This document shows positions 1,256 to 24,970 of a stretch of 64,000 bases of DNA, one piece after another. Below the pieces are notes generated by a model. That model saw nothing but the letters and a program-made list of their open reading frames with translations, ran no database searches and was not told where the DNA came from. The DNA is taken from the IMG/VR virus record IMGVR_UViG_3300022200_000019, positions 1 to 64,000 of that record. One strand, 5' to 3'. Each line of letters opens with the position of its first letter. Within the stretch, counting starts at the first letter, position 1. The translations under genes were made by a program, and so were the position numbers.

Positions 1256-1274
1256 TAGTTTTACTATTACTAAC

Positions 1275-1300
1275 AAAAAAGCCCCGCAAGGGGCTTTTTT
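1275..1300. terminator. Bidirectional intrinsic terminator after gp23
   Basis: AAAAAAGCCCC-GCAA-GGGGCTTTTTT, GNRA loop, A/T tracts on both sides. Confidence 0.92.
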
Positions 1301-1313
1301 ATTGAGTGTACAT

Positions 1314-1321
1314 CATAAATA
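1314..1321 (+). promoter_or_regulatory. T4-like late promoter box (CATAAATA)
   Basis: Variant of TATAAATA upstream of a structural gene; the TAAATA core recurs before many late genes in this window. Confidence 0.7.
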
Positions 1322-1393
1322 ATATTGTTCATAGTAACTTATGCAGTTTTGCCACTGCGTATGGCCTAGAACGTCACATTAAGGAGAAAACAA

Positions 1394-2029: not shown

Positions 2030-2102
2030 TATTTAATTAACGTTAAGATAATTTTACTTGACTAATATCCCTCTAAGATACATACACTTAGAGGGATTTT
2101 TT

Positions 2103-2678
2103 ATGACTGCATTTGTGCTTGGCAACGGCGTTAGCCGAAAAGGGATTAATTTATACAAACTGGAAAATCACGGTGATATCTACGGATGCAATGCTCTGTA
2201 TCGTGAGTTTACACCAACTGTGTTAGTAGCAACTGATCCAGGAATTAGTCGTGCAATTCAGGAATCTGGATACGCACAAAATAACAGATTTTATACACGT
2301 CGACCATTTTCAGACAGTGGCGCACACGCATTGGATGCCAAATACAAAGGCATGAGCAGTGGCCCCAACGCTGTTAATCTGGCTGTGAAAGACAGCCACA
2401 AACAGATATTTTTGTTGGGATTTGATTTTGGCAGTGTTAATGGCTTGTTTAACAATGTTTACGCAGACACCGAATTCTATAAAAAATCCACAGATAAGCC
2501 CACATTTGGTGGAAATTGGATGAATCAGATCAAACAAATCATGCACGAAAATCCAGACGTAATTTTTACCAGAGTGGTCAATGGTTACAGTCAACAATTT
2601 AACATTGATTGGAAGAGTTGCCGAAATTACACCGAGATACCAGTGGACCAGTTTCAGGATGAGTATAAATACACATAA
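2103..2678 (+). CDS. MptE/Maf (DUF115)-like protein, possible glycosyltransferase
   Basis: Start refined to ATG 2103 (GAGGG RBS). Motifs AFVLGNGVSR, IYGCNALY, VATD, SSGPNAVNLA and IFLLGFD match the GNGxS...GCN...LLGFD pattern of the DUF115/Maf/sialyltransferase-like fold. Confidence 0.6.
   Translation: MTAFVLGNGVSRKGINLYKLENHGDIYGCNALYREFTPTVLVATDPGISRAIQESGYAQNNRFYTRRPFSDSGAHALDAKYKGMSSGPNAVNLAVKDSHKQIFLLGFDFGSVNGLFNNVYADTEFYKKSTDKPTFGGNWMNQIKQIMHENPDVIFTRVVNGYSQQFNIDWKSCRNYTEIPVDQFQDEYKYT
2664..2671 (+). promoter_or_regulatory. T4-like late promoter, perfect TATAAATA
   Basis: Exact T4 consensus, followed by an AAAGGA RBS and the 2691 ATG that begins the structural run. Confidence 0.8.
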
Positions 2679-2690
2679 AGGAACTAATCT

Positions 2691-3386
2691 ATGTCGCTCA
2701 CAGTTAAACGTATCACTGGTGATTATGAAATTCAGACAGTTAATCTGGCTGGTAGTACTGAAAACCAGATTATATTTACAACAGACCAAGTGTTAATTCG
2801 CGGTGATTTACAAGTTACTGGAGATTATAACACAACGACAGTTACTGAAAGTAACCTTTCACTAAAAGACAGATTTATTTTACTTAATGAAGGTGAAACA
2901 GGATCAGGTGTAAGTGCTGGAACATATTCAGGCATTGAAGTTGACCGTGGCAGTTTGGATAAATCTGTTTTTTATTTTAATGAAACCACAGACAAATGGG
3001 TTATTGGCACGGTTAACACATCAACTGGTACTGTAACTGAAATTGGCGATGTATTGACTACTGGTGCTGGTGGCGGGTTAACAGATGTAGTTGATGATAT
3101 TACTCCACAACTGGGTGGTGATTTAGATGTTAACAGTCAATCAATTGTTTCGGTATCTAACGGCGACATTGTGCTTGCTCCAGATGGTACCGGTACTGTC
3201 AAGATTGAAAGCACAGAACTAGCATTTGATAAACTAGCAAGCGATCCAACCGCACAAGCAGATTATAACTTGCTGTACCACAAAACAGAAGGTTCTGGCG
3301 GAACTGGTTTATATTTTAAAACGAGTTCAACTGCCGACGAACTTGTATCAAAAGCAAAAGCAATCGTTTACGGTATTATTTTTTAA
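2691..3386 (+). CDS. Virion structural protein (tail/baseplate-associated)
   Basis: Carries the TTTV..S.L...D..I.LN...G....GIE..RG......F.ETTDKW module shared with the fibres, plus PQLGGDLDVN. Confidence 0.65.
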   Translation: MSLTVKRITGDYEIQTVNLAGSTENQIIFTTDQVLIRGDLQVTGDYNTTTVTESNLSLKDRFILLNEGETGSGVSAGTYSGIEVDRGSLDKSVFYFNETTDKWVIGTVNTSTGTVTEIGDVLTTGAGGGLTDVVDDITPQLGGDLDVNSQSIVSVSNGDIVLAPDGTGTVKIESTELAFDKLASDPTAQADYNLLYHKTEGSGGTGLYFKTSSTADELVSKAKAIVYGIIF

Positions 3387-3396
3387 GGATTAAACA

Positions 3397-3714
3397 ATGG
3401 CAATAACAACAGCAACAGTAGCACAAACTACCCCAGCCGCAGTTTACACAAGCAGCGGTAATACTGCTGTAACATGGGCAACATTTACAAATTATATTGG
3501 TTCAGCGGCAACCTTAACACTACATATTGTTCCAAATGGTGGCAGCGCAACAGATCAAAACATGATTTTAGACGCAGAATCTATTGTAGCAGGTGATACA
3601 TTAAATTTGTATACAGCCGGCGAAAAGATTTTACTTGAAAGCGGCGATGCAATTTATGCTGCTTCAGATACCGCTACCGCAGTTAACGCAGTTTTTAGCT
3701 ATACGAGTATCTAA
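3397..3714 (+). CDS. Small beta-rich structural protein
   Basis: RBS AAGGA; operon context; Thr/Ala-rich. Confidence 0.55.
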   Translation: MAITTATVAQTTPAAVYTSSGNTAVTWATFTNYIGSAATLTLHIVPNGGSATDQNMILDAESIVAGDTLNLYTAGEKILLESGDAIYAASDTATAVNAVFSYTSI

Positions 3715-3719
3715 TTAAC

Positions 3720-4136
3720 GTGCCAATTGGACAGTTTCTCAAAAATAGACGAACTGGTAACTCTAGACAGGTTGTAATTCCGTCTGGGCCTGGTTCTGAC
3801 AGACCAGATGAACCTATTTTTGGTAGTTTTAGATTTAATACAACAGCAGGTACACTAGAAGTATTTGACGGGAGTGCCTTTAAGTTGCTTGCTGTTGAAG
3901 GATTAACAAATGTTGTAGTTGACGACTTTACAGGTGATGGATCAACAGTAGTGTTTGGATCAATGACAAATACTGTAACCAGCGCAACAGATGTTCTAGT
4001 ATTTGTTGGCGGCGTGTATCAAATACCAACTACAAATTACACAGTTGACGGTAGTTACGATATTACGTTTACTACTGCTATTCCAAATAGTGTGCCAATT
4101 AACATTATTCATAACTTGAACTCAACGACGGTATAA
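3720..4136 (+). CDS. Baseplate/tail accessory structural protein
   Basis: G.FRFNTT.G.LEVFDG and FTGDGST..F...VLVFVGGVYQ.P...YTV.G...ITF modules, also present in the 6690 and 13481 proteins. Confidence 0.6.
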   Translation: MPIGQFLKNRRTGNSRQVVIPSGPGSDRPDEPIFGSFRFNTTAGTLEVFDGSAFKLLAVEGLTNVVVDDFTGDGSTVVFGSMTNTVTSATDVLVFVGGVYQIPTTNYTVDGSYDITFTTAIPNSVPINIIHNLNSTTV

Positions 4137-4137
4137 T

Positions 4138-6690
4138 ATGGCTATTAATAGAATTACCGCAGCAATGCTAGGCACTACAAACTTAGAACAAAGTGACTAC
4201 ATTCTAGCGACTGACGGCAGCGGTAATTTATACTGGACTGATGTAGGTTCTGTGTCAACAGGACACGACATTACGCTAGGAGATCCATCAGATACGTCTC
4301 TATTCCCTCCAGGAGCAATTAATAATTGGCAAAATTCAACAGTTGTTACGGATGCAATCGACGACTTAAATGAATTAGCAGCAAACATAATAAACAATAC
4401 TGCTGTTGCTAATGTTGATTTTACTGCAAGTCCGACAGCAGGCGGTGCAGGAACAGCAGTTACATTAACTATTACGGCTAATGGCAATCCAGACAGATAT
4501 ACAATTAACTGGGGTGATGGAACTACAACAACCGGAACTGCTAACAGCACACCAACACATACATATTCGTCAAATGCCGGATCACCGTATGCTGTAACTG
4601 TTACAGCATATAATTCAAATGGAACTGGTACAGGAAGTTCTGTAAGTAAAGAACGTGATGATTATGTTATTATTTACACGGCAGATCCTGTAGTGAGTTA
4701 TGATTTTTATAGAACTCCTACGGGTGGCACAGCACTAAGTGGAAACAATTTATATGTTATCGAAGGCGAAAGTCTATACCTTGATAACAACACAACTAAT
4801 ATTGGTGCTGCTACCGTTGATTATTCAATGGCATGGGGTGACAGCAGCGCAGATTCTAGTATTGTTTCTGATTCTGCTGCTGGTGGCACAGCAGGCGCAC
4901 GCTTACAACATACATGGGGAGCAGGAACTAGTTCAGGTAACGGAAAAGACACTACACAATTAACATTAAACAGCCACAACACCGCAGATCCTGCTGTAAT
5001 ACCTACTAGTAACACAGTACGTTTAAAAGTATACGCAAGCAATCCAACTGCTCCGTATGGTTTAACGGAAACTTCAATTGGATATTCAGGATCTGTTGGG
5101 ATTAATCCAAGATTGGCAGTAGGATTCACTGATAATACATCTGTTGCAATATATTCAGCAGGCGATGATGTTAATCGTACAGTAGCGACTACTGGTGATA
5201 TTGAATCTACTGTGACAACATCGTATACATACAATCCAGAATCTGGAACATTGAGTGCTAAAGTTAATGGAAATACAGATGGCTCAGTTATATTATCAGC
5301 ATCATTAACACCAGTTACCAACACGAGTCTTGTTATCACAGAAGTTGCTGATTATAACCTGTTAGATAGTTACGGAAATAGTGTATCGTTTGATAATAGC
5401 ATTTACTATCCAGGTGCATTTTCTGGATTCAAAGCAAAAGTATCAAAAACCGCTAGTAGCATTTCAGTTGGTGTGAACAGTTTTCAAATAACACACTCAG
5501 CAGGCGAGTCAACAGATCCTGTTGGGTTTGTTAAAGATGACTTAACAGCAATACCTACTGTAGATATTAGCAATGCTACATTAACAGAAAATGTCAGTGG
5601 GACTTATCGATATATTTCAGGAATCCCGTATTATAATAGTGGAAGTCCTAGTTTAACATTATCGGGTATTTTAATTTCAAACTTAGTTGGACAATGCTAC
5701 ACTAACCAAGCAAGTATTGTTGAAGTTAATGATGGAACTAATCAAGAAGGTACATCGGCAAACGCTGTTGTTGAGTCTTTTTACAGTTATGCAAATATTG
5801 ACGGTGCAACGACTATGCTATCAGGAGGTATTCCAAAGGTTAACATTGGAACTTCAACACCATATGCTATCGGTAACTTAACAATACCCATTACGTCAAG
5901 TACAGTTAGAACAGTAAGTCGTGTTAAAGTGTTAGCAAAAAATGTTAACGGAACAACTGATTACACTGACGATTTAGCGGTTAATGTACAAGTTCATAAA
6001 TCATCACAATCAGGCGTTAACGAGATCTCTATCCCTGTATCAGTTGACTTAGGTAACGGAGTATATGTAGATAACGGTGTACGAATTTTTGATTTCAACG
6101 CTGCTAGTACCAACACACCAGCGGTTAGTAACGCTATAAATTATTATACGAATAATGTGTATACTGAACTAAGTGATCCGGGCGTTGCTGGAACTAAAGA
6201 AGCAACTGTTAGACTTGGAGTACTAAAGCATGACACTACGGACTATAGCACAAATTATTTACCAGTAGGTCCGGATAGAAGTGCAGATACAGGAACACAA
6301 TATTTTACATTTGCTTTCCGTAGACAAGCAGTAGCGAACTTTTCGGTAAGAATCGTATCGTCCACTGGCATTTCGGGATGCTGGATTGCTGCACCTAATA
6401 CTGCAATCGATAATACATCGACGCTAAACGGATGGTTAGATTGTAGCACACAATATGCTGGTTCAGGAATTCCTGGTGCTGACACAAATAGTGGCGGTAA
6501 TGGTAGCAATGGCTGTGCTTTAACTGGAGCAGATAGAATTATTGCTGGCAGTAGTTTAAATACCTACTACACAATGACATTAGGAACAGAAAACATGAGC
6601 AACTCTACAGGTAACGTAGTTCTTGTTCGTATTGCGTTGAGTAGCGGAGAAAGCATTACCGCTTTAGAAGTAGCAGAGGGTAACAATTAA
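4138..6690 (+). CDS. PKD/Ig-like domain-containing virion protein
   Basis: Two PKD signatures (YTINWGDG...PTHTY and YSMAWGDS...LQHTW); Ser/Thr-rich. Confidence 0.7.
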   Translation: MAINRITAAMLGTTNLEQSDYILATDGSGNLYWTDVGSVSTGHDITLGDPSDTSLFPPGAINNWQNSTVVTDAIDDLNELAANIINNTAVANVDFTASPTAGGAGTAVTLTITANGNPDRYTINWGDGTTTTGTANSTPTHTYSSNAGSPYAVTVTAYNSNGTGTGSSVSKERDDYVIIYTADPVVSYDFYRTPTGGTALSGNNLYVIEGESLYLDNNTTNIGAATVDYSMAWGDSSADSSIVSDSAAGGTAGARLQHTWGAGTSSGNGKDTTQLTLNSHNTADPAVIPTSNTVRLKVYASNPTAPYGLTETSIGYSGSVGINPRLAVGFTDNTSVAIYSAGDDVNRTVATTGDIESTVTTSYTYNPESGTLSAKVNGNTDGSVILSASLTPVTNTSLVITEVADYNLLDSYGNSVSFDNSIYYPGAFSGFKAKVSKTASSISVGVNSFQITHSAGESTDPVGFVKDDLTAIPTVDISNATLTENVSGTYRYISGIPYYNSGSPSLTLSGILISNLVGQCYTNQASIVEVNDGTNQEGTSANAVVESFYSYANIDGATTMLSGGIPKVNIGTSTPYAIGNLTIPITSSTVRTVSRVKVLAKNVNGTTDYTDDLAVNVQVHKSSQSGVNEISIPVSVDLGNGVYVDNGVRIFDFNAASTNTPAVSNAINYYTNNVYTELSDPGVAGTKEATVRLGVLKHDTTDYSTNYLPVGPDRSADTGTQYFTFAFRRQAVANFSVRIVSSTGISGCWIAAPNTAIDNTSTLNGWLDCSTQYAGSGIPGADTNSGGNGSNGCALTGADRIIAGSSLNTYYTMTLGTENMSNSTGNVVLVRIALSSGESITALEVAEGNN

Positions 6691-9600
6691 TGGCAATTTC
6701 AGACAACCAAAAAGTTGACTATTTGTGGAAAAAGTTAGGTTACTCTGCTACAAAGACAGATACTAATGCTAACAAACTTGGTCCAAACGAAGCTATTCCA
6801 TCACCGTTGTTATTACGCGGTGACAATGTATGGGCAAATTCTGCTGACATTCCAACAGTTATGCCAGCAAGCTCAGCCGGTGTTGTTACTGTATATCCAA
6901 CAAGTGCACCACAAGAATGCACAATGGATAACACAGCAACAACAAACAGAACATGGAAAACTGGTTTAATAGATTGGATCCCGCCGGAGTTTGGATCTAC
7001 ATATCAAGTAAAAGTTTATATTTACACTAGTGGAGATGCAGCAAACGCAGCCGCTAGTGGTACACAAGTGTTTGCAACGGGTTCAGGAAATAATGATGAG
7101 TGGTTCTTTGACTATCAGTCGGGTGTTTTACATTTTATTGGCAGTAGCCTTCCTAACGGTGTTAGTTTTACAGGCAAATCAGTATACGTGTCTGGATCTC
7201 GTTACACTGGCGACAAAGGTGTAAGTTTAACTGGCGATTTTGTTTTTACGAATAATGAAATATCATTAGACCCAGACAATATTATTGTACTAGATACAAC
7301 AACTGGCTTAGTTATACCTACTGGTTCTAGTTTGCAACGTCCTGCTTCTGCTCCAGTAGGTACAATAAGATTTAATACCAATAACGGAAGTCATGAATAT
7401 TGGGACGGAACAGATTGGGTTATACTAAATGATCCGTTAGCAGGATTTGCGGTACAGGAAATTACAGGAGACGGGTCAACTACTAGCTTTACTCTTGACG
7501 CTGAAGTAAATAATGCATCAACTCTTGTAGTAACAATTGGCGGTGTGGTTCAAACCCCAGGACAAGGTTACACTTTAAGCGGTACAACAACTATTGTGTT
7601 TGCAGAAGCTCCGATTGCAACGGACGAAGTTGCTATCCGATTCTTTGGTAGTACTAGAAATGTTTATGTATCAGCATTGTTAAGTCCAAACTGGACTACG
7701 GAAGTTGCTGCAAACGACGCTAACGTTGCAATTAATATTAATAGCAGCAGTATTCTAACTGTTTCAGAAACTGAGACTACACTTGTTGGTGATTTCCTTC
7801 CGGCAGTAAACGAAGTATATGATCTTGGTAGTAGCACGTATAAGTGGAAAGATTTACACCTATCGGGAAATTCGATCTACCTAGGCGATCTAATATTAAA
7901 AGATAATGGCGACGGCACCTTTGGAATTTATAACAATAGCGATGGTTCCGAAGCGTCGATTACTATTACATCTGAAGATGCAGAAAAATGGACTACAGCT
8001 AGAACAATTACTGTCGATGGCGCAGTTACTGGTAGTGTTACACTCGACGGCAGCAGCAATGTTACATTAACAACAACATTAAATTTATCTGGAGCACCTA
8101 CTGCCCCAACAGCAACCGCAGGAACAAATACAACACAAATTGCAACAACGGCGTTTGTAACAACTGCGGTAGACACAGCAATTACAAATCTATTAGATGA
8201 TGCACCAGGTGTGTTAGACACATTAAATGAGTTAGCAGCAGCAATTGGTGACGATGCTAACTTTATAGGAACAATTAACGACAATATTGACTCTAAACTA
8301 AGTTTATCCGGCGGCACAATGACCGGCAACATTGATATGGGGTCTCATAGTTTAACTGGATTACCAGCACCGTTGTCATCAACAGACGCTGCAACTAAAT
8401 CATATGTGGATGCTGCACTATCCAGTACATTGTCAAGCGGTGAGATTGTTCTAGGTACAAATACCACTGGTAACTTCGTTTCAGTTATTACAGCCGGCGA
8501 AGGCATTGACGTTAGCGGAACATCGGGCGTATCGGCAGAAGTTGTTATTTCTGCCGAAGATGCAACAGCAACAAACAAAGGTATTGCAAGTTTTAACGTA
8601 AGCGATTTTACTGTTACTGACGGTAATGTAACTCTAGTTGAAGATAGATTATATGACTTAGTTGGTGAAGTATTCACCGGAAACTCAGTTGAAGGCATTA
8701 TTACTACATTCAATGATGCAACTGAAAAAGTTGACATATCGGTAACTGACTTTGATATTACACTAACAGGCGACATAACTGGTTCTACTTCTGTAACAAA
8801 TTTTGGGTCAAACATTGTAATCAACACAACATCAAACGCAATCGTTGGTATTACAGTACAAGATGATTATGTTGATTTAGGTGATTCTGGAACAGTTAAT
8901 ACGCTAAGTTTTAACGGTGACAACATTACACTTGTTCGTTCAGGTAATACTGTTACTGTTGAAGTAGATGCTGGTTTAACTGAATCAGATGTTCGAGACA
9001 CAATAGGTAATACTGTTAAAGGAACTATTCGAGATCCGGACACTGAAGTTGAAACTGAGTCAGGTATTACTGTAAATTATGATTACGAAAACAATACTGT
9101 TGAATTAGGTGTTAGAGAATTTGACATTACGCTAGTTGGTGACATCACAGGTTCAGGTACTGTATCAAGACTGCAAGACGTAACAATTACTACAGTTGCT
9201 GACTTTATTGCTGGTATTACGGTACAAGATGATAACGTTGATCTTGGGTCTGCTGGAACTGTTAACACTTTAAGTTTTGACGGTAGTAATATTGTTGCTA
9301 CACGCAATGGCGACAAAGTTAATATTAGTATTCCAACTGGGTTAACTGAAGATGACGTTCGCGACACAATCGGTGCAACTGTTAAAGGAACAGTTAGAGA
9401 CCCAGAAACAGCACTTGAAACTGAAACTGGTATTACTGTAAACTATAACTCGGAAAATAATACAGTTGAATTAGGCGTTAGAGAATTTGATATTAACTTA
9501 TCAGGAGCGGTAACCGGTAGTGCAACAGTATCAAGATTACAAGATGTAACTATTATTACAGATACTGATGCAATTGAAGGCTTAACTGTTACTAAGAACA

Positions 9601-10484
9601 GTACAGCAGTTGGATCAATAGAGCAAATTAAATCTCTAAATTTCGTTGGTGCTAACTTAGAAGTAGGAGTTAGCAATACAGATTCATCTGTACTTGACAT
9701 TGCGGTTACTGGTATTGTTGACGAAAACTCAATTGTAGATATCATTAGACCTAAACTTGCTGGTGACCACGACGGTGTAACTGTAACATACGATAATTAT
9801 AACCGCGTTTTTGATATTGCAGTTGATCCAATTACTGTAACGCTTGCTGGTGCAGTTACTGGATCTGGTACAATTACTTTTGATGGTTCGGGAACAGACA
9901 GTACACTAAACATTAATACAGCACTTGGTGGCGGAACTGCTGAAATTAGTGTTTCCGACGAATATGAAACACAAGGTACTGTATCGTCAATTAACTTTGT
10001 AGGTGGCGGCATTACTACAGCAGTAAGTTTAGATGGAACAACAGCAACAGTTTACGTTCCAAACTCACCTGCTAATGAACCGTTCCTAACAGTTGAAGCA
10101 GGAAGTGAAAATGTTCCTAATGCAAGACGTTTAGTAGCAGGCACTGGCATTAGTATTACAGATGGTGGAGCTGGTAGAACATTAACAATTAGTGCTGCAA
10201 GCGACGCAATTTTAGCAAGAAGCCAAATAGCACAAGATGACACACTAGTTGGACAACAAATTGAACTGAATTTTAAAGGTAGTCGGTTTGTACAGCCAGT
10301 TATTGAAGATGACGGCGACAATGATAGAATAAATATAACTATCTACGATATTAAGGAATATTGGTTTAGATCTGATTTTGATTGTGGTTATCTAACTGAT
10401 GATGAAGGTGCTATATTAAATATGGGCAATGATCTAAAGAAAGGTATCTTTGAAACTAAACCAGATCTAGGTTCGATATCATAA
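6690..10484 (+). CDS. Large tail fibre/baseplate structural protein with internal repeats
   Basis: 1264 aa; LDTLNELAAAIGDDANF, APTAPTA..GTNTTQIATTAFV and DAATKSYVD fibre motifs; 122-aa tandem repeat. Confidence 0.75.
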   Translation: MAISDNQKVDYLWKKLGYSATKTDTNANKLGPNEAIPSPLLLRGDNVWANSADIPTVMPASSAGVVTVYPTSAPQECTMDNTATTNRTWKTGLIDWIPPEFGSTYQVKVYIYTSGDAANAAASGTQVFATGSGNNDEWFFDYQSGVLHFIGSSLPNGVSFTGKSVYVSGSRYTGDKGVSLTGDFVFTNNEISLDPDNIIVLDTTTGLVIPTGSSLQRPASAPVGTIRFNTNNGSHEYWDGTDWVILNDPLAGFAVQEITGDGSTTSFTLDAEVNNASTLVVTIGGVVQTPGQGYTLSGTTTIVFAEAPIATDEVAIRFFGSTRNVYVSALLSPNWTTEVAANDANVAININSSSILTVSETETTLVGDFLPAVNEVYDLGSSTYKWKDLHLSGNSIYLGDLILKDNGDGTFGIYNNSDGSEASITITSEDAEKWTTARTITVDGAVTGSVTLDGSSNVTLTTTLNLSGAPTAPTATAGTNTTQIATTAFVTTAVDTAITNLLDDAPGVLDTLNELAAAIGDDANFIGTINDNIDSKLSLSGGTMTGNIDMGSHSLTGLPAPLSSTDAATKSYVDAALSSTLSSGEIVLGTNTTGNFVSVITAGEGIDVSGTSGVSAEVVISAEDATATNKGIASFNVSDFTVTDGNVTLVEDRLYDLVGEVFTGNSVEGIITTFNDATEKVDISVTDFDITLTGDITGSTSVTNFGSNIVINTTSNAIVGITVQDDYVDLGDSGTVNTLSFNGDNITLVRSGNTVTVEVDAGLTESDVRDTIGNTVKGTIRDPDTEVETESGITVNYDYENNTVELGVREFDITLVGDITGSGTVSRLQDVTITTVADFIAGITVQDDNVDLGSAGTVNTLSFDGSNIVATRNGDKVNISIPTGLTEDDVRDTIGATVKGTVRDPETALETETGITVNYNSENNTVELGVREFDINLSGAVTGSATVSRLQDVTIITDTDAIEGLTVTKNSTAVGSIEQIKSLNFVGANLEVGVSNTDSSVLDIAVTGIVDENSIVDIIRPKLAGDHDGVTVTYDNYNRVFDIAVDPITVTLAGAVTGSGTITFDGSGTDSTLNINTALGGGTAEISVSDEYETQGTVSSINFVGGGITTAVSLDGTTATVYVPNSPANEPFLTVEAGSENVPNARRLVAGTGISITDGGAGRTLTISAASDAILARSQIAQDDTLVGQQIELNFKGSRFVQPVIEDDGDNDRINITIYDIKEYWFRSDFDCGYLTDDEGAILNMGNDLKKGIFETKPDLGSIS
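8847..9578 (+). repeat. Two tandem 366-nt (122-aa) repeats
   Basis: GITVQDD..DLG..GTVNTLSF.G...DVRDTIG.TVKGT.RDP...ETE.GITVNY..ENNTVELGVREFDI starting at 8847 and 9213. Confidence 0.9.
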
Positions 10485-10494
10485 CAGGATTAAC

Positions 10495-13371: not shown

Positions 13372-13431
13372 TAAAATACTCAATTACCTTATTAAAAATA
13401 AGGGCTTACACCTTTTTTATCTCCTTTTTAC

Positions 13432-13439
13432 GATAAATA
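13432..13439 (+). promoter_or_regulatory. Late promoter box (GATAAATA)
   Basis: TAAATA core in the intergenic region before the 2384-aa fibre gene. Confidence 0.65.
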
Positions 13440-13480
13440 CTTTTGCTTTAATTAAGGCAATCTATAGGGGATAATACAAC

Positions 13481-16400: not shown

Positions 16401-19400
16401 ATGCTACAGTTGGTGGTACACTAGGTGTAACTGGTGCTACAGGTATTGATGGCAACTTTGACATTAACACTAACAAGTTTACAGTCAACGCTACTTCAGG
16501 TAACACAGCGATTGCTGGTACATTAGGTGTAACTGGTGCTACTACATTAAGCAGCACATTAGGTGTAACTGGTAATACAACAGTTGGTGGTACATTAGGT
16601 GTAACTGGCGAATCAACATTAGCTTCAGCTACAGTATCAGATCTAACTGCTGGACGTGTTGTACTAGCTGGCACAGCAGGTGCAATTGAAGACTCAGGTA
16701 ACTTAACATTCAATGGTACTGAACTAGGTGTTACTGGTACATTAGATGTTTCTTCGGACGCATCAGTAGGCGGTAACCTAAGCGTTACAGGTAATACTAC
16801 AATTAGTGGTAACCTAACAGTTTCTGGTACAACTACTACTGTTAACTCAACCGTTGTTGAAGTTGCTGACCCAATTATGACAATTGGTGATGATGCTTCA
16901 GATGATAACTTAGACCGTGGTCTAAAATTCAAATGGCATAACGGTACTGCTGCTAAGGCTGGCTTCTTTGGTTATGATGAGTCAACTGGCGAGTTTGTAT
17001 TCATCGAAGACGCAACTGATACAGCAAGTGTAATGAGTGGTTCACTAGGTGCTGCGGCATTTGGTACAATGCGTGTAGCTGATTTAACAGATAACCGCGT
17101 ACTATTAGCCGGTGCTTCGGGTGAAATTGAAGATTCAGGTAACTTGACATTTGACGGTTCTGCTTTAGCAGTAACTGGCACAGCATCGATTAGCAGCAAT
17201 GCAACAGTCGGTGGTACATTAGGTGTTACAGGTGAATCAACTCTGGCAAGTGCTACAGTATCCGATTTAACATCAGGTCGTGTTGTACTAGCTGGCACAG
17301 CCGGATCACTAGAAGATTCAGGTAACTTAACATTTAATGGTACACTACTTTCTGTAACTGGTAACGCTTCTACAAGCGGTAACATTACAGCAGGCGGTAC
17401 TTTAAGTGTAACTGGCACTTCAACATTCACTGGCGCTGTAACTGCTTCTAGCAATGCTACAGTCGGTGGCACTTTAGACGTAACTGGTGCTACATCATTA
17501 AGCAACACATTAACTGTTTCTGGTGCTACTGCGCTAAACGGTGGCTTAACAATGGACACCAACAAGTTTACTGTTGCTGACACAACTGGTAACGTTGCTA
17601 CTGCTGGTACATTAGATGTAACTGGTGCTACGACATTAACTGGTTTACTAACAGCTAACGGTGGTATTACTGCTGATTCTGGAGTATTCACAGTTGCTGA
17701 CACAACTGGTAATGTACACACAGGTGGCACATTAAATGCTGATGGCGCTGCTACACTAGGTTCAACACTAGGCGTTACAGGTGCTACTACATTAAGCAGC
17801 ACGTTAGCTGTAACTGGTGCTACAACACTAACAGGTGCTTTAACTGCTAATGGCACAGTAAGTTTAGACGATGCTGTTGTTATTAACGAAAGTGGTGCTG
17901 ATGTAGACTTCCGTGTTGAAGGCTCTACTAACGCTAACATGTTAATTGTTGACGCTGGTACAGACTCTGTATTAATTGGAACAGCTACTCCAGTAACTGA
18001 CGCTTCATTTGTAATTGGTACTACTGACTCGTTCATGCTACCAGTTGGTTCAAACGCAGAACGTCCAGCAACTGGTGTTCAAGGTATGTTCCGTTTCAAC
18101 AACATCTCAACCACTCCAGAATACTATGATGGTTCTAAGTGGACACAGATGTCAACTGAATTCACTGTTATTGCTTCAGAAACATTTAACGGTGACGGGG
18201 CAACTACTGCGTTTACACTACAAAGCAGTCAAACAACTGCTAGCACAATTGTTAGCATCAACGGTGTTGTTCAGCTACCAACTACAGCATACGCTGTAAG
18301 CGGCACTACATTAACATTTACTGAAGCTCCTGCTACAGGCGACGTTATTGAAGTACGTGAACTAACTACCACTGAAACTGTTGTTAGCCTATCTAACACA
18401 GCTGGTACAGCAACAATTGAATGCTCTGAAGCTAACAGCAACATCGCAGTTGATTGCGGTACAATGACTATTAATGGTAACTTAGTTGCTACTGGTAGCA
18501 TTACTGCTAACGGCGACCTAGCATTTGGTGACGCTAACACTGATAGCATTACATTTAACGCTGACGTTGCTTCAAGCATCCTTCCAGATGTTGACGCAAC
18601 TTATAACTTAGGTTCAAGCAGCGCCAAGTGGAACAATGTATATGGTGTGAATGTTACAGCAACAGGTACTACTACAGTAGCTGATCTAACTGTTGGCGCA
18701 GGCTCAACAATTAGCATGGGCAGCAACAAGATCACTGGCGTAGCAGCTCCAACTGCTTCAACTGACGCAGCTACTAAGGGTTATGTTGATGGTCTACTAA
18801 GTGCTGGTACTGACATTTTCTCAATGGCAGGCGATACTGGTACAGCAAGCACAATGCAAACAGGTGATACTATTACTATCTCAGGTGGTACTGGTTTATC
18901 TTCTGCTTCAACTGCTGATACAATCACAATCAACCTAGATAACAGTGGTGTAACTGCTGGTTCTTATGGTAGTTCAACTGCTATTCCAACCTTCACAGTT
19001 AACGCACAAGGTCAAATCACTGCTGCTGGTACAACATCGATTAGTTCAGACATGTCTATTGCAGCTGACGCAGGCACAGGTGGCCCAATTACAGTTGGCA
19101 CAGACACGTTTACTATCGCTGGTGGTACTAACGTTAATACTTCGGTATTTGGTGATACTATTACTGTTAACTTAGATGCTAGCCCAAGCGTTACTAACCT
19201 AACTGCTAGTGGTACAATCACTGGTGCGTTAAGCGGCAACGTAACTGGTAACGTTACAGGTAACTTAACTGGTAATGTAACATCAACTGGTACATCATCA
19301 TTTGGTACGGTATCAACTAGCGGTAATTTAACTGTTGGCGGTACGTTAAACTCAGACGACATTACAGCTTCAACTGTAACTGTTTCTGGTAACGCTACTA

Positions 19401-20635
19401 TTACTGGTAACTTAACAGTACAAGGTACTACAACTACTGTTAACTCTAACACAGTTAACATTGGTGACTCAATTATCACTCTAAACAGTGACGAAGCTGG
19501 TGCTCCGTCGCAAAACGGCGGCTTTGAAATTGAGCGTGGTACTTCAACTAATGTTAGCCTAGTATGGGATGAAACAAATGATAAGTGGACAGTAGGTTCA
19601 CAAACATTTGTTGCTTCAACATTTGAAGGTGCTTTAACTGGTAACGTAACTGGTAACGTAACTGGTAACGTAACTGGTTCTTCTGGTTCGTGTACTGGTA
19701 ACGCTACAACAGCATCAGCACTACAAACTGCACGCACTATCGCATTAAGTGGTGACGTAAGCGGTTCTGTTAGCTTTGATGGTTCAGCGAATGCTACTAT
19801 TACTGCTACTGTTGCTAACGACAGCCACACACACGCAAGTTCAACTATTAGCGACTTCTCAGAAGCCGTTCAAGACGTTGCTGGTGCTATGTGGTCAACT
19901 AACACTGAATCAGGTGTTAGTGTTGTTTACCAGGACATTGACGGTACACTAGACATTGATGTAAATGACTTTACAATTACATTAAGCGGTGACGTAACTG
20001 GTTCTGGTACAGTAACTAACCTAGGTAACGTTAGCATTACAACTACTGTTGCTGCTAACTCTGTTGCGCTAGGTACTGACACAACTGGTAACTATGTTGC
20101 TAGTGGTGCTACATCAGGTAACGGTATTAGCGGTTCAGTAAGCAGCGAAGGTGGTACATTTACTGTAACATCAAACGCTACTTCTGCTAACACAGCAAGT
20201 ACTATTGTATTCCGTGATGCTAGCGGCAACTTCTCAGCAGGTACTATTACTGGTACAGCTACTACAGCACAATACGCTGACTTGGCAGAAATTTACTCAG
20301 CAGACGCTGAAATTGAGCCAGGTACTGTTGTATGCTTTGGTGGTGACGCAGAAGTAACTACTTGTAACCACGATATGGATCGTAAGGTAGCAGGTGTTGT
20401 TTCTACTAACCCAGCATACTTAATGAACAGTGAAGCAGACGGTGTTGCTGTAGCACTAACAGGTCGTGTTCCTTGTAAGGTAACTGGCACAATCCGTAAG
20501 GGTGATATGCTAGTATCAGCAGGTAACGGCATGGCACGTGCTGAAGAGAATCCAGCTATGGGTTCGGTTATTGGTAAGGCACTAGAAAACAGCGAAGGTG
20601 ATAACATCATTGAAGTTGTTGTAGGTCGCTTATAA
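13481..20635 (+). CDS. Giant tail fibre (2384 aa) with C-terminal peptidase-G2-type chaperone
   Basis: Extreme G/T/S/A/V bias, repeated GTLGVTGATTL units and several repeated larger modules; C-terminal YADLAEIY...VSTNPAYLMN...ALTGRVPCKV.G...KGD.LV...IGKALE. Confidence 0.8.
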   Translation: MAITRIKNNQITDLTITAAKLANNTITAGKLEDNLTYGSNLTITGNLTVNGASTTVNSTTVAVDDPILLLAPDQAGAGALDIGFIGERGTDTNVAFVWDESADKFVAALTSSADSSSTITVSSYADMQVNDLDLAALTATGNASIGGTLGVTGATTLTGALAANGGITVDTSNFTVDGSTGAVTTASTITATGAISSSAGVSGTTGTFSSNVSAGGTLASTGDFSVNTNKFTVASASGNTSIAGTLGVTGNTTIGGTLGITGETTLASAIVSDLTAGRVVLAGTAGALEDNNNLQFDGSELGITGSIDVSSNVVIGGNLTVNGTTTTVNSTVVTIDDTIFTLGGDSAPASDDDKDRGISFHWHNGTAAKYGFFGYDDSLGEFVFIQDGSETAGVMSASSGLGSAAFGSMRVTDLTNGRVLLAGASGEIADSGNLTFNGSALSVTGTATISSNATVNGNLDVNGATTMGNLTIDGTSTVDMGANRVTNVATPTATSDAATKAYVDQEVSAGGSVLKISGDTGTDSVTTGAANDTLAFSGTANEIVTAVTDNTVTVSLPDNVTIGNNLSVTTDASVSGALTVTGATTASTIDASGAVGVDGNFDVNTNKFTVAAATGNTTVAGTLGVTGATTMSSVTTTGNVTVGGNLTVSGTTTTVNSTTVTVDDPIFTLGGDTAPASDDNKDRGIEFNYHNGTAAKVGFFGWDDSAGEFVFISDATNVAEVMSGSLGNAAFGSARVDDLTQNRLVIVGASGELADNSNLTYSSDRLTVAGTNGISVSNAAILSGNTEVGGTFQVTGATSLNGNVTLGDAGADAVTVTGTATFAQPADFDGGFTVAGSQTINVGSNRIQAVATPSAGTDAVNKSYVDNLLSAGFDISDGTDSQTISQGDTFIINGTPSEVNVAVSATDTLTIGLPDSVTISDALTVTGAATVGTTLGVTGATTLSSTLAAGNTTITGTLSTSGAATLNSASVTNNATVGGTLGVTGATGIDGNFDINTNKFTVNATSGNTAIAGTLGVTGATTLSSTLGVTGNTTVGGTLGVTGESTLASATVSDLTAGRVVLAGTAGAIEDSGNLTFNGTELGVTGTLDVSSDASVGGNLSVTGNTTISGNLTVSGTTTTVNSTVVEVADPIMTIGDDASDDNLDRGLKFKWHNGTAAKAGFFGYDESTGEFVFIEDATDTASVMSGSLGAAAFGTMRVADLTDNRVLLAGASGEIEDSGNLTFDGSALAVTGTASISSNATVGGTLGVTGESTLASATVSDLTSGRVVLAGTAGSLEDSGNLTFNGTLLSVTGNASTSGNITAGGTLSVTGTSTFTGAVTASSNATVGGTLDVTGATSLSNTLTVSGATALNGGLTMDTNKFTVADTTGNVATAGTLDVTGATTLTGLLTANGGITADSGVFTVADTTGNVHTGGTLNADGAATLGSTLGVTGATTLSSTLAVTGATTLTGALTANGTVSLDDAVVINESGADVDFRVEGSTNANMLIVDAGTDSVLIGTATPVTDASFVIGTTDSFMLPVGSNAERPATGVQGMFRFNNISTTPEYYDGSKWTQMSTEFTVIASETFNGDGATTAFTLQSSQTTASTIVSINGVVQLPTTAYAVSGTTLTFTEAPATGDVIEVRELTTTETVVSLSNTAGTATIECSEANSNIAVDCGTMTINGNLVATGSITANGDLAFGDANTDSITFNADVASSILPDVDATYNLGSSSAKWNNVYGVNVTATGTTTVADLTVGAGSTISMGSNKITGVAAPTASTDAATKGYVDGLLSAGTDIFSMAGDTGTASTMQTGDTITISGGTGLSSASTADTITINLDNSGVTAGSYGSSTAIPTFTVNAQGQITAAGTTSISSDMSIAADAGTGGPITVGTDTFTIAGGTNVNTSVFGDTITVNLDASPSVTNLTASGTITGALSGNVTGNVTGNLTGNVTSTGTSSFGTVSTSGNLTVGGTLNSDDITASTVTVSGNATITGNLTVQGTTTTVNSNTVNIGDSIITLNSDEAGAPSQNGGFEIERGTSTNVSLVWDETNDKWTVGSQTFVASTFEGALTGNVTGNVTGNVTGSSGSCTGNATTASALQTARTIALSGDVSGSVSFDGSANATITATVANDSHTHASSTISDFSEAVQDVAGAMWSTNTESGVSVVYQDIDGTLDIDVNDFTITLSGDVTGSGTVTNLGNVSITTTVAANSVALGTDTTGNYVASGATSGNGISGSVSSEGGTFTVTSNATSANTASTIVFRDASGNFSAGTITGTATTAQYADLAEIYSADAEIEPGTVVCFGGDAEVTTCNHDMDRKVAGVVSTNPAYLMNSEADGVAVALTGRVPCKVTGTIRKGDMLVSAGNGMARAEENPAMGSVIGKALENSEGDNIIEVVVGRL
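19637..19678 (+). repeat. Perfect 12-nt in-frame tandem repeat (ACTGGTAACGTA x3 + ACTGGT), encoding TGNV
   Basis: Read directly from the sequence. Confidence 0.9.
20051..20248 (+). repeat. 66-aa module also present at 23005-23202 in another fibre gene
   Basis: AANSVALGTDTTGNYVA(S/A)GATSGNG...SNAT(S/N)ANTASTIVFRDASGNFSAGTI; 64 of 66 residues identical. Confidence 0.92.
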
Positions 20636-20656
20636 TCCTTTAGGGTTATAATACCA

Positions 20657-20688
20657 AAAAAGAAAGGGCGGAAACGCCCTTTCTTTTT
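20657..20688. terminator. Bidirectional intrinsic terminator
   Basis: AAAAAGAAAGGGCG-GAAA-CGCCCTTTCTTTTT. Confidence 0.92.
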
Positions 20689-20714
20689 GACTAAAATTTC
20701 TAATCACATAACCA

Positions 20715-20722
20715 GATAAATA
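20715..20722 (+). promoter_or_regulatory. Late promoter box (GATAAATA)
   Basis: After the terminator and before the 20744 ATG. Confidence 0.65.
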
Positions 20723-20743
20723 TGTAAAAAGGTAAAGAATACA

Positions 20744-21643
20744 ATGGGCTTAACTAGACCAAGACTTGGACAATTCCAAACTACTACAACAGCATTCGAT
20801 GACGCTATTATTGTATTAAACAATAACGCTAGTAATGCTGATAATAATACAAAAGATATTGGTATTGTATTTGAACGTGGGGCTGACCAGAATCAGGTTT
20901 TTCTATGGGACGAGTCTGCTGACGAATTTATTTTAGCTAGTTCAAACGAACAAGGCTCAACGTCCGGCGATGTAACGTTAATCGGGTACGCAAATCTACA
21001 TATTAATAATCTAATTGCTGAAGGCAGTATTACAATGAAGGGTAATGTTGTCCTCGGTGACGCAGTTACCGATACAGTTACATTCAATGGAGCATATACA
21101 TTCCCTAGTGCTGACGGAAGTGCCAATCAAGTACTAGCAACAGACGGTGCTGGCAACTTGAGTTTTGTTAATGTAGCCACAACATTAGATGCTGTTACTA
21201 CCAACGGTGCCACAACAACAAACGCTATTAGCACTGGCGCTATTACTGTTAGCGGTAATATTGTTCCGAGCGCAAACGAAACATATAGCTTAGGTACTCC
21301 AACAAATAGATTCTCTACACTACACGTTGCTCAAAGCACAGTATATTTAGGCGAAACAGCACTTAGTATTGTAAGTGGAGAGTTATATGTAGATGGAAAT
21401 CCTGTCGCTGGCGCAGGTGACGCTTGGCCAGGATATGATGGCGATTATGATTTAGCAAAAGCACTAGCACAAACAACTTCCGAAACTCCGTTTGAGGAAG
21501 GCGGTGAAGATCCATTTGGTGTTGTACTAACACTTGTGTTTGACAACATGGACCCAGGTGGGCAAATTATTACATATGATTTAGCCGGCACATACGCAAG
21601 CGGCACAGCAACCGGAAGCCCTGAGGCTTACTTGGGCGCATAA
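20744..21643 (+). CDS. Virion structural protein (fibre-related)
   Basis: DIGIVFERG...FLWDESADEF module; YTFPSADGSANQVLATDGAGNLSF and IVPSANETYSLGTPTNRF fibre motifs. Confidence 0.65.
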   Translation: MGLTRPRLGQFQTTTTAFDDAIIVLNNNASNADNNTKDIGIVFERGADQNQVFLWDESADEFILASSNEQGSTSGDVTLIGYANLHINNLIAEGSITMKGNVVLGDAVTDTVTFNGAYTFPSADGSANQVLATDGAGNLSFVNVATTLDAVTTNGATTTNAISTGAITVSGNIVPSANETYSLGTPTNRFSTLHVAQSTVYLGETALSIVSGELYVDGNPVAGAGDAWPGYDGDYDLAKALAQTTSETPFEEGGEDPFGVVLTLVFDNMDPGGQIITYDLAGTYASGTATGSPEAYLGA

Positions 21644-21646
21644 ATA
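21639..21646 (+). promoter_or_regulatory. Late promoter box (CATAAATA) overlapping the upstream stop codon
   Basis: Followed by an AGGA RBS and the 21670 ATG. Confidence 0.55.
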
Positions 21647-21669
21647 TAGATATCAAACAGGATTAGGAA

Positions 21670-23874
21670 ATGCCTACAGTACTACAATTAAGACGTGGAA
21701 CAACCGCACAAAACAACGCTTTCACTGGCTCCGCTGGCGAGCTTACATTCAACACATCAACTGGTGCATTAAGAGCGCACGATGGAACAACAGCAGGCGG
21801 TGCTGAGATGCTCGTTAATACTGGTAGTAACGCAAATATTTCCCAATCAGTTACATTAACTGGTGCAGTCACTGGTTCGGGTACTATTACTAATCTTGGC
21901 GATTTAACTATTGCTACAACTGCTACAAATGACCCAACTATTACACTAGCAGGTGATTTAACTGGTAGTTGCACACTAACTAACTTAGGAAATGCTACAT
22001 TAACAGCAACTATTGCTGCTAACTCAGTAGCACTTGGCACTGATACTACTGGTAATTATATGTCTAACATTTCTGCTGGTACCGGAATTAGTGTAAGCCA
22101 CACACCAGGCGAAGGATCAACAGGAACTATAGCATTATCACATCTAGGGATTCAATCACTAAGTGATCCTCTAGCTGATAGGATTTTAATGTGGGACAGT
22201 AGCGCAGGCGCAAGTGCTTGGTTAACTGTCGGATCAAATCTAACATTATCAGGAACTACATTAAGTGCCGACACACAAGCACCTGTTGCTGGTACCGGGA
22301 TTAGCGTATCCGGAACAACAGTTTCGTTAGGAACATCAGGAGTAACTGCCGGGAGTTACGGTAGTTCAAGTGCTGTTCCTGTATTAACTGTTGACGCATA
22401 TGGACGTATCACTAGCGCAAGTACAGCAAGTATTACAACTGACTTATCCATTGCTAGCGACTTAGGCACTGGCACAATTAGTTTAGCTAGTGAAACAATG
22501 ACAGTTACAGGCGGCACTAACGCTAATACGAGCATTAGTGGGAACACAATTACAGTAAATGTTGATTCAAGCCCGAGTTTTGGCGGCAATGTTACTATTG
22601 CTGGTAACTTAACAGTAAACGGTACTGTAACCACAGTAGCTACAACAAATACAACAATTAGCGATAGCTTAATTGAATTAAATTCGGGCGCAGCTTCAAA
22701 CGCAAGCGACTTAGGTATTGTAATGGAACGTGGTTTAACTGGAGATAATGCATTTATTGGGTGGGACGAATCCGCTGATAAGTTTATTGTAGGTACAACA
22801 ACAGCAACAGGATCAAGTACAGGCGATTTAGTTATTACTGCTGCTAACCTAACTGTAGCAACTCCTGTTGCTAGCACAGACGCAGCGACCAAAGGATATG
22901 TTGATTCTGCTGTTTCAACAAGTCCTGTAATTACATTAGCAGGCGATTTATCAGGAAGTTGTACATTAACTAACCTAGGAAGTGCTACGTTAACAGCAAC
23001 AATCGCTGCCAACTCAGTAGCATTAGGTACTGATACAACTGGTAATTATGTAGCAGCAGGCGCCACATCTGGCAACGGTATTTCAGGATCTGTAAGCAGC
23101 GAAGGTGGCACGTTTACTGTAACGTCAAATGCCACTAACGCAAATACAGCGAGTACTATTGTATTCCGTGATGCGTCAGGTAATTTCTCAGCAGGTACTA
23201 TTAGTGCTAATTTAACAGGTAATGTTACAGGTAATGTTACAGGTAATGTTACAGGTAGTTCAGGCTCATGCACAGGAAATGCTGCTACAGCAACAAATGC
23301 AACTAATGCTGCAAACGTACAAGTTGATGCTGATAATCTTACAAATGCTACCCACTACATCACTTTCTCGGGTGCTGCAACTGGTAACAACCGTCTAAAC
23401 AGCGATACAGGGTTAACATATAACCCATCAACAAATACATTATCAACTAGTATTTTTTCTGGTACGTCAACAACAGCGAGATATGCTGACTTGGCTGAAA
23501 ATTACATAGCAGATGAAGCATATTCCGCTGGTACTGTTGTAGCATTTGGTGGTGATGCAGAAGTTACAGTTGCTAACACATTTGCTTCGCGCAACACAGC
23601 AGGTGTAGTATCAACTAATCCAGCACACTTAATGAATTCGGAGTTAACTGGAGACACAGTAGTAGCATTAGCACTAGCAGGACGTGTTCCGTGTCGTGTA
23701 GTTGGTGTAGTACGTAAAGGCGACTTAATGGTTGCTTCAAATACTCCGGGGTGTGCTATAGCATGGGGAGAAGAATTACGCGATCCGCCAGCAGGCTCTA
23801 TTATTGGCAAAGCACTTGAAGATAAATCAGGTCAAGGTGAAGGAATTATCGAAGTAGTTGTTGGTGTACGATGA
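21670..23874 (+). CDS. Tail fibre with C-terminal peptidase-G2-type chaperone
   Basis: N-terminal VLQLRRGTTAQNNAFTG..GEL; C-terminal YADLAENY...VVSTNPAHLMN...ALAGRVPCRV. Confidence 0.78.
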   Translation: MPTVLQLRRGTTAQNNAFTGSAGELTFNTSTGALRAHDGTTAGGAEMLVNTGSNANISQSVTLTGAVTGSGTITNLGDLTIATTATNDPTITLAGDLTGSCTLTNLGNATLTATIAANSVALGTDTTGNYMSNISAGTGISVSHTPGEGSTGTIALSHLGIQSLSDPLADRILMWDSSAGASAWLTVGSNLTLSGTTLSADTQAPVAGTGISVSGTTVSLGTSGVTAGSYGSSSAVPVLTVDAYGRITSASTASITTDLSIASDLGTGTISLASETMTVTGGTNANTSISGNTITVNVDSSPSFGGNVTIAGNLTVNGTVTTVATTNTTISDSLIELNSGAASNASDLGIVMERGLTGDNAFIGWDESADKFIVGTTTATGSSTGDLVITAANLTVATPVASTDAATKGYVDSAVSTSPVITLAGDLSGSCTLTNLGSATLTATIAANSVALGTDTTGNYVAAGATSGNGISGSVSSEGGTFTVTSNATNANTASTIVFRDASGNFSAGTISANLTGNVTGNVTGNVTGSSGSCTGNAATATNATNAANVQVDADNLTNATHYITFSGAATGNNRLNSDTGLTYNPSTNTLSTSIFSGTSTTARYADLAENYIADEAYSAGTVVAFGGDAEVTVANTFASRNTAGVVSTNPAHLMNSELTGDTVVALALAGRVPCRVVGVVRKGDLMVASNTPGCAIAWGEELRDPPAGSIIGKALEDKSGQGEGIIEVVVGVR
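23215..23256 (+). repeat. Perfect 12-nt in-frame tandem repeat (ACAGGTAATGTT x3 + ACAGGT), encoding TGNV
   Basis: Read directly from the sequence. Confidence 0.9.
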
Positions 23875-24542
23875 TTGAAGAACAGTACAGAACAGAGTAC
23901 GAAGGCGAATTTGTAGTAACTGGTATTCACTACAAAAACGGTAAAAAAGAACAAACACGTGAGTGGATCGATAATCCACTTGAACTCAAATCAATTTCTG
24001 GACGTGCAGTATGCGTTAGTGACGGATTAACGGTTGATGATTTTAACTTGTCAAGATTAATGGCACGTCACGGACTGTTAAACACATTAGCACTACACGT
24101 ATACGGAACCAATAAATTATATCAAAAATTCCACCCAAACTTTCACGTAACGTTTGACAAAGAAGACTTAGAAGATTTAGTAGCACAAAACTTAACAGAA
24201 GAAATAATGGTATATACTAATACCAGCAACTGTTTAAAATACCCTGGTGAGTTCTTTATTATCCCTTATGGTATTAAAAGTACAAGCGAAGCGATTGCTG
24301 CTTGGTTAGCATGCTTTGATGGGCATAAAGAAATTTATCTATTAGGATACGATCAATACACTAGAGATTCTACGCGACGCACTAAGCTAATTGACTCTGT
24401 TGAACGAGTTATTAAAGCGTATAGTTCAACTAAGTTTATTCATGTTATTAGAAGCGGTGAAACACCCGATGAATGGCGTCAGCACCTAAATGTAAAAACA
24501 ATGACTAGACCGGAATTTATTAGTCATTGCGATATTTCATAA
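23871..24542 (+). CDS. Divergent paralogue of the 2103 MptE/Maf-like protein
   Basis: YGTNKLYQKFHPNFHVTFD aligns with YGCNALYREFTPTVLVATD; AAWLACFDGHKEIYLLGYD aligns with AVNLAVKDSHKQIFLLGFD. Confidence 0.6.
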   Translation: MIEEQYRTEYEGEFVVTGIHYKNGKKEQTREWIDNPLELKSISGRAVCVSDGLTVDDFNLSRLMARHGLLNTLALHVYGTNKLYQKFHPNFHVTFDKEDLEDLVAQNLTEEIMVYTNTSNCLKYPGEFFIIPYGIKSTSEAIAAWLACFDGHKEIYLLGYDQYTRDSTRRTKLIDSVERVIKAYSSTKFIHVIRSGETPDEWRQHLNVKTMTRPEFISHCDIS

Positions 24543-24970
24543 CTGTACAATTTTTCCACAGTTTCGATTTTATTATAGATATCTTCGATATTAATAGTAG
24601 CCCAAAGTCCCGGATGTAGAGGCTTTGGAATAATTCCTTTGTCAATCCACGAATATCCTAAGTGTTCGTCGTTGAGTTTTGGAATAAATTCGTCTGTTAC
24701 TAAGCAAAAGAATGTGTGGTATATAAAATGATTATTAGGTCCTGTAAACTGTTCAATAGGAACAAGTTTAATATACTCTGGTAAACTGCCCATTTCTTCA
24801 GAGCATTCGCGAGTAATAGTATCTAATAATGCTTCGCCATTTTCAACCTTGCCGCCAGGTAACCCCCAATGATAAGGATGTTTAGGATCATTACGCATTA
24901 AGTACAAATAACGTTGTGTGTTATAGGCGTAGAACCAAATACCTACTGCGTTTAGATCACCAGTGACCAT
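24524..24970 (-). CDS. NUDIX hydrolase
   Basis: Nudix box WGLPGGKVENGEALLDTITRECSEEMG; LNDEHLGYSW...PLHPG. Confidence 0.92.
   Translation of the reverse strand: MVTGDLNAVGIWFYAYNTQRYLYLMRNDPKHPYHWGLPGGKVENGEALLDTITRECSEEMGSLPEYIKLVPIEQFTGPNNHFIYHTFFCLVTDEFIPKLNDEHLGYSWIDKGIIPKPLHPGLWATINIEDIYNKIETVEKLYSYEISQ

Follow-up and report, generated by a model that had tools for sequence, protein, structure and literature searches.

The window analysed here is the first 64 kb (64,000 nucleotides) of IMG/VR virus record IMGVR_UViG_3300022200_000019, which spans 212,917 bp with an estimated completeness of 61%. Our subject is a pair of plus-strand genes at the two ends of its fibre array: gene A (2103–2678; 191 aa), a minimal enzyme-like protein of the GT42/Maf superfamily, and gene B (23871–24542; 223 aa), its degenerate paralogue. 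The source is an uncultured giant phage whose gp23 capsid protein shares 66–68% identity with its counterparts in Vibrio phage 2.275.O and Pseudomonas phage PA5oct, both giant myoviruses; the DNA-level match to the Escherichia coli 121Q/PBECO4 group extends over only ~160 nt, within the capsid gene. The major capsid gene (gp23 family; 65–1255, plus strand; Pfam Gp23 E 7e-98, phrog_138) forms the upstream landmark of the module and is followed on the same strand by the gene for p211, a conserved, Gly/Ala/Thr-rich protein of 211 aa (1394–2029), by a hairpin with a U-run (2067–2097), and by A. Between A and B, also on the plus strand, lie three small conserved genes (231, 105, and 138 aa; 2691–4136), placed by weak matches to phrog_677 and tail-fibre PHROGs and by gene order, and six fibre-like genes (850, 1264, 958, 2384, 299, and 734 aa; 4138–23874), recognized through matches to tail-fibre PHROGs and Mtd_N and through a C-terminal domain common to several of them. 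Convergent with B on the minus strand are a NUDIX hydrolase gene (24524–24970; Pfam NUDIX E 3e-17) and a gene for a gp15-like tail sheath stabiliser (24952–26370; Pfam T4-gp15_tss E 9e-32), the downstream landmark.

A first-pass annotation of this DNA had described two Maf/DUF115-like genes at either end of the fibre genes and aligned them with each other, and both descriptions were borne out. The quoted strings are present, with A reading ...VLGNGVS...YGCNALYREFTPTVLVATD...HKQIFLLGFD and B reading ...CVSDGLT...YGTNKLYQKFHPNFHVTFD...HKEIYLLGYD, and in the BLASTP alignment (27% identity over 116 aa, E 8e-7) SDG of B does stand opposite GNG of A. A profile built from 29 relatives of A aligned with one from 31 relatives of B over 168 columns, the full length of both (probability 99.6%, E 8e-25), and because this profile-profile alignment is so strong, the likeness reflects homology and not chance. 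A larger A profile of 79 sequences matched 80 of 80 B genes from IMG/VR. A and B are thus true but old and distant paralogues. Word-indexed searches of metagenomes with clustering at 90% identity returned >2,700 clusters of relatives for A and 95 for B. At 50% identity, family A comprises 1538 metagenomic clusters that are almost wholly viral; it reaches no Pfam cut-off and is unnamed wherever sources give names. When A and B were compared by tblastn with 50,697 phage records, the matches were pelagiphage relatives of A only, with nothing for B, and an NCBIfam search of A, B, a third copy (C, described below), and their neighbours gave no match.

The sequence signature of A points toward sialyltransferases of glycosyltransferase family 42 (GT42). 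Across the 79 diverse A sequences (mean column identity, 30%; 29–49% identical to the window protein, four close relatives excepted), the motifs G7-N8-G9-x-S11-R12, C29-N30, S86-G87, G106-x-D108, N117-N118-x-Y120, and Y126, together with D45, are invariant or nearly so. In Cst-II, the motifs G8-N9-G10, C30-N31, S132-G133, and G152-x-D154 have a role in binding cytidine monophosphate (CMP). Hidden Markov model alignments place G7-N8-G9-x-S11 of family A at Cst-II G8-N9-G10-x-S12, C29-N30 at C30-N31, S86-G87 at S132-G133, and G106-x-D108 at G152-x-D154. Searched against the PDB, the 79-member profile matched nine distinct GT42 sequences (E 4.8e-8 to 1.1e-6), and chains of Maf, MptE, and pyrophosphokinases were absent at E up to 10. 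Window A itself did not match Pfam CST-I (PF06002). Among PHROGs it belongs to phrog_30607, of unknown function, and weakly resembles phrog_4603, labelled alpha-2,3-sialyltransferase; its nearest named cluster in the protein atlas combines MptE-like and WaaZ_KDO_III.

Structural models agreed with this placement. AlphaFold2 with family alignments gave a predicted local distance difference test (pLDDT) score of 95.8 and a predicted template modelling (pTM) score of 0.92 for A, and values of 91.0 and 0.89 for B. In Foldseek searches of the PDB with both proteins, GT42 sialyltransferases came first (9c08, Cst-II, and Cst-I; E 9e-5 to 9e-4), followed by GT29 sialyltransferases, Methanocaldococcus jannaschii HPPK/MptE, thiamine pyrophosphokinases, and Maf (5mu5); MptE, which the first-pass annotation had named as the best match that would speak against its proposal, led for neither. 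Both A and B carry the modified GT-A, single Rossmann-like fold of Cst-I and Cst-II, which is also that of the central DUF115 domain of Maf. Among Swiss-Prot AlphaFold models, WaaZ was the top match for A (E 2.7e-4, TM 0.56, residues 2–190); at the sequence level, an hhalign comparison of A with E. coli WaaZ was not significant (probability 1.2%) and aligned only the SG...GxD motif. Neither a PF01973 search of B nor a PDB profile search with family B gave a meaningful match. Fold by itself cannot separate a glycosyltransferase from a kinase.

Compared with each of these known systems, A is reduced or distinct. Cst-I and Cst-II of Campylobacter jejuni and the Pasteurella enzyme 9c08 are 259–291 aa long and act on lipooligosaccharide, not protein, whereas A has 191 aa and a lid segment with another signature, NNxYxxxxxY. 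Maf, a flagellin O-glycosyltransferase for nonulosonic acids, is in its solved structure (PDB 5mu5) a 632-residue chain with regions on both sides of the core, and one Maf chooses its acceptor through a C-terminal tetratricopeptide repeat domain or the partner GlfM; A and B, in contrast, are bare cores, the A profile does not match 5mu5, and no flagellin or nonulosonic-acid genes lie near A or B. MptE, the archaeal 6-hydroxymethyl-7,8-dihydropterin pyrophosphokinase (PDB 8sd5), and the thiamine pyrophosphokinases align with only 118–130 residues of A, the MptE match covering residues 1–159, so that the C-terminal unit of A is left uncovered; there is no sequence-level match and no pterin or folate gene context. 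WaaZ, the probable transferase of the third 3-deoxy-D-manno-oct-2-ulosonic acid (Kdo) residue in the lipopolysaccharide core of E. coli and Salmonella, is 283 aa long and acts on lipopolysaccharide.

Gene B has diverged at the very positions that define family A. In a joint alignment, family B lacks equivalents of N8, R12, C29-N30, and G87, the NNxYxxxxxY segment is entirely absent, and the aspartate equivalent to D108 is kept in 61% of members. B has residues of its own instead: an N-terminal beta-hairpin extension bears invariant R7, Y10, G12, E13, G24, and E31, and further invariants are C121, P132, F149-D150-G151-H152, Y184, N207, and D221. B is therefore a constrained and functional protein, and one unlikely to share the ligand of A. 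The start codon of B and the stop of the preceding fibre gene, the last in the array, overlap in an ATGA, and B is translationally coupled to that gene. Given this coupling and the analogy with Maf-2 and GlfM, an adaptor or chaperone role would be the most economical reading for B. It had been suggested earlier that the second copy may be a non-catalytic partner; the loss of the A-family motifs fits a non-catalytic copy, and on binding the single A–B complex prediction, with a score of 0.02, counts neither way.

Gene order was compared in 80 of at least 599 IMG/VR loci for A (40–100% identical to window A) and 80 of at least 581 for B (39–100% identical to window B). A p211 homologue lies immediately upstream of A in 63 of 80 loci, typically ~48 nt away, a capsid gene lies upstream in about 50, and the three small genes follow A in about 33. 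As the most constant neighbour of A, p211 is itself a candidate substrate or partner. In eleven other A loci that were inspected, large and mostly Ser/Thr-rich open reading frames (ORFs) directly follow A. Downstream of B, the convergent NUDIX and gp15 genes occur in all 80 loci. In 62 of 78 loci, B and the ORF upstream of it share 4 or 1 nt, and in most loci that ORF is fibre-like and matches the last fibre of the window. The complete bracket from A to B was found on a 30.5-kb JGI contig and in IMG/VR record G005, and the A end and the B end of the layout on contigs of 335 kb and 346 kb, respectively.

The region just upstream of A suggests how its expression may be limited. Although a mechanical ORF list starts A at TTG 2058, the ATG at 2103 is the likely start, because metagenomic relatives of 188–196 aa align from the first residues of the ATG-started protein and because a conserved hairpin ends just upstream. 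This hairpin (2067–2097) has a folding energy of -15.7 kcal/mol (z -5.2), none of 200 shuffled sequences folded equally well, and it is kept with compensatory changes in two relatives. Together with its U-run it extends up to the ATG of A, and a GAGGG ribosome-binding site is buried in its 3' arm. The element may be a terminator, a translational damper, or both. Capsid-module genes are strongly expressed, and such a hairpin would fit a low-abundance enzyme encoded downstream of them.

We tentatively favour, at somewhat less than even confidence, a reading in which A is a CMP-sugar transferase acting on a product of the virion module and B is a non-catalytic helper of the last fibre. Judged from its conserved motifs, A probably acts as a small glycosyltransferase with a CMP-activated sugar as donor. 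As a minimal enzyme of one domain, it would belong to the superfamily of GT42 (Cst-I and Cst-II), Maf, and WaaZ, and would bind a CMP-activated acidic sugar supplied by the host and transfer it to the fibres, the three small proteins, or p211. We infer the donor, the acceptor, and the contacts among A, B, and the fibres. A would be made in small amounts through the hairpin and U-run that bury its ribosome-binding site. B, an old duplicate that kept the fold and lost the family motifs, would be cotranslated with the last fibre gene and serve that fibre non-catalytically, as an adaptor, a specificity factor, or an aid to its assembly. CMP-Kdo is made by every Gram-negative host and is our candidate donor, with a host nonulosonic acid as the other. 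Maf enzymes accept CMP-Kdo as well as CMP-activated N-acetylneuraminic acid (10.1101/2020.06.03.131540). The full and most specific version, in which this phage clade decorates its own fibres or neighbouring virion proteins with host-supplied Kdo or nonulosonic acid by means of a 191-aa transferase with a non-histidine base and a pseudoenzyme partner B, is rather improbable.

Several observations weigh against the virion-directed transferase. Histidines serve as the catalytic bases of GT42 enzymes, His188 in Cst-II and His202 in Cst-I (PMC4202792). Family A has no conserved histidine (≥85%) anywhere, and Cst-II His188 aligns with G136 of the window protein, a non-conserved position. Pfam assignments are equivocal as well: window A scores 16.7 bits for MptE-like (PF01973) against a gathering cut-off of 34.6, and among 29 close relatives MptE-like is touched by 15 and CST-I by 13, all at E 1e-3 or weaker (CST-I at E about 2e-3 or weaker) and below cut-offs. 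A and B are each single-domain proteins lacking the flanking acceptor-binding domains of Maf. By its conserved motifs A thus resembles a GT42/Maf core, yet without one GT42-defining feature, the catalytic histidine. A is placed in the GT42/Maf/WaaZ superfamily and in none of its named families, because it has neither the GT42 histidine nor the core-flanking regions of Maf. The supply of donor is a further difficulty. In the 213-kb record (61% of the genome) we found no NeuB, CTP_transf_3 (CMP-sugar synthetase), NAD-dependent epimerase, GT2, or GT4 gene. Any CMP-sugar would need to be supplied by the host, and the proposed nonulosonic-acid route of Maf type finds no gene for making or activating that sugar in the sequence available.

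Gene content in relatives and the wider A family also speak against fibres as the target. In record G003 (L177, 1155–13993), from a close relative, p211 and A are followed by just two giant fibre genes, of 1322 and 2591 aa; NUDIX comes directly after these, and B is missing. PA5oct has the same frame of capsid, fibre, NUDIX, and gp15 genes without A or B, and Vibrio phage 2.275.O likewise has neither; A and B are therefore not needed for fibre building as such. They are additions specific to certain lineages, placed at the two edges of the array of fibre genes, and B is optional. The order that the first-pass annotation expected to be conserved is so for A and B among metagenomic relatives, but B is absent from one A-bearing relative and both genes are absent from the cultured ones. 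In the Pelagibacter phages HTVC008M and Mosig, longer A-like genes lie between helicase-loader and single-stranded DNA (ssDNA)-binding protein genes, away from fibres. Two A-like genes of HTVC008M (gp002 and gp007; region 752–4983) bracket a NodU-like carbamoyltransferase and two 2-oxoglutarate (2OG)-Fe(II) oxygenases, a cluster that looks like a sugar or small-molecule tailoring set beside replication genes. Elsewhere, an A-like gene on another phage contig adjoins two GT4 glycosyltransferases. Paralogue C, a third, degenerate, and more divergent copy in the record (114561–115142, outside the window; E 1e-9 by hhalign versus family A), is located three genes downstream from a UDP-glucose/GDP-mannose dehydrogenase family gene, followed by ClpP and radical-SAM genes (region 110619–115142). 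The recurring context of distant A relatives is thus sugar chemistry, not fibres. Fibre location does not extend to the whole family, more distant A members sitting in other contexts, and these different contexts weaken the fibre target; gene position alone suggests fibres as the acceptor of A. Several copies of the A-like fold per phage seem common; on L012 (3578–5585), a 435-aa protein with a tandem double A-like domain adjoins a further A-like gene of 237 aa.

If the acceptor is not a virion protein, A may be a glycosyltransferase of this superfamily whose target, as for Cst and WaaZ, is a glycan on the host surface (lipopolysaccharide core, lipooligosaccharide, or capsule); it would mask receptors or remodel the infected cell, and fibre adjacency would reflect mere conserved order. 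Lipooligosaccharide or lipopolysaccharide, not protein, is the substrate of the nearest relatives by sequence, those of GT42, and of WaaZ, the top Swiss-Prot fold match; the pelagiphage relatives lie outside virion modules between the helicase-loader and ssDNA-binding protein genes, and cultured relatives make fibres without A. We nonetheless consider this unlikely, since this clade retains A at the start of its fibre genes, inside the structural block, and the A and B proteins look soluble. An enzyme of another kind would share the same fold: A could be an ATP-dependent pyrophosphokinase, or use nucleotides in some other way, in the manner of MptE or the thiamine pyrophosphokinases, with a small molecule or a hydroxymethyl group as its substrate; we judge this quite unlikely. 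Matches to the kinases span only 118–130 residues and stop at about residue 160, whereas those to glycosyltransferases run to the end of A; the A profile reaches E 5e-8 for GT42 and finds no kinase chain in the PDB at E up to 10; and the 213-kb record contains no pterin-binding (dihydropteroate synthase, DHPS) gene.

A very unlikely explanation would dispense with catalysis, with both A and B helping fibres to assemble or attach by means of an old nucleotide-binding fold put to new use. Fibre chaperone genes usually sit right after a fibre gene, and the translational coupling of B to the last fibre gene would suit such a helper, as would the absence of the conserved motifs from B and C. The invariant A residues that match Cst-II motifs over 79 diverse sequences are, however, hard to explain without ligand binding, and one A-bearing relative has no B. 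Modification of phage DNA by A, through addition of a sugar or activation of a modified base, is brought to mind by the pelagiphage relatives, which have replication genes on either side and 2OG-Fe(II) oxygenases as neighbours. Those oxygenases, however, are annotated as phytanoyl-CoA dioxygenase type, A lies within the virion module in this clade, and no known DNA glycosyltransferase is among the fold matches, all of which make this role highly improbable.

Should the virion-directed transferase prove right, glycosylation of virion proteins could alter how giant phages that abound in aquatic habitats recognize receptors, resist proteases, or evade host defences. No earlier report is known to us in which a virion protein from a phage of Gram-negative bacteria carries O-glycosylation of the sialic-acid type; literature searches aimed at this subject found none, and those on DUF115 in phages returned nothing usable. 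Family A would represent the GT42/Maf/WaaZ fold in its smallest known form, and a 191-aa enzyme of this kind could serve as a tool for attaching sialic-acid-type sugars. Furthermore, one apparently intact copy alongside two degenerate copies in a single genome is a clean example of viral pseudoenzyme evolution.

The remaining features of the module can be described briefly. The claim that A and B are the only enzyme-like genes from gp23 to the last fibre gene is roughly right: other ORFs are fibre-like or unassigned, except that two matches to enzyme families fall below threshold. One is p211 as Hydantoinase_A (22.7 bits versus a cut-off of 22.9), which we treated as chance; p211 has no PDB or PHROG match, in a family-level search as well. 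The other is an End_tail_spike match in the 299-aa protein encoded at 20744–21643. A search for the T4 late promoter TATAAATA found 3 sites versus 6.7 expected and was uninformative. The fibre proteins contain 19–28% Ser plus Thr; such richness is common in fibre proteins, and we rejected it as a sign of glycosylation. The three small genes after A weakly resemble fibre-connector and fibre proteins. The 3' ends of B and the NUDIX gene overlap by 19 nt (24524–24542), and overlaps of 4–34 nt occur in 74 of 80 related loci. Fibre-like genes differ in count and length among relatives. A C-terminal domain of ~120 aa (phrog_22593/19602) is common to the fibre proteins encoded at 10495–13371, 13481–20635, and 21670–23874, and two of these three also have a common N terminus, Mtd_N-like or phrog_9648; the shared termini suggest modular swapping of fibre bodies.

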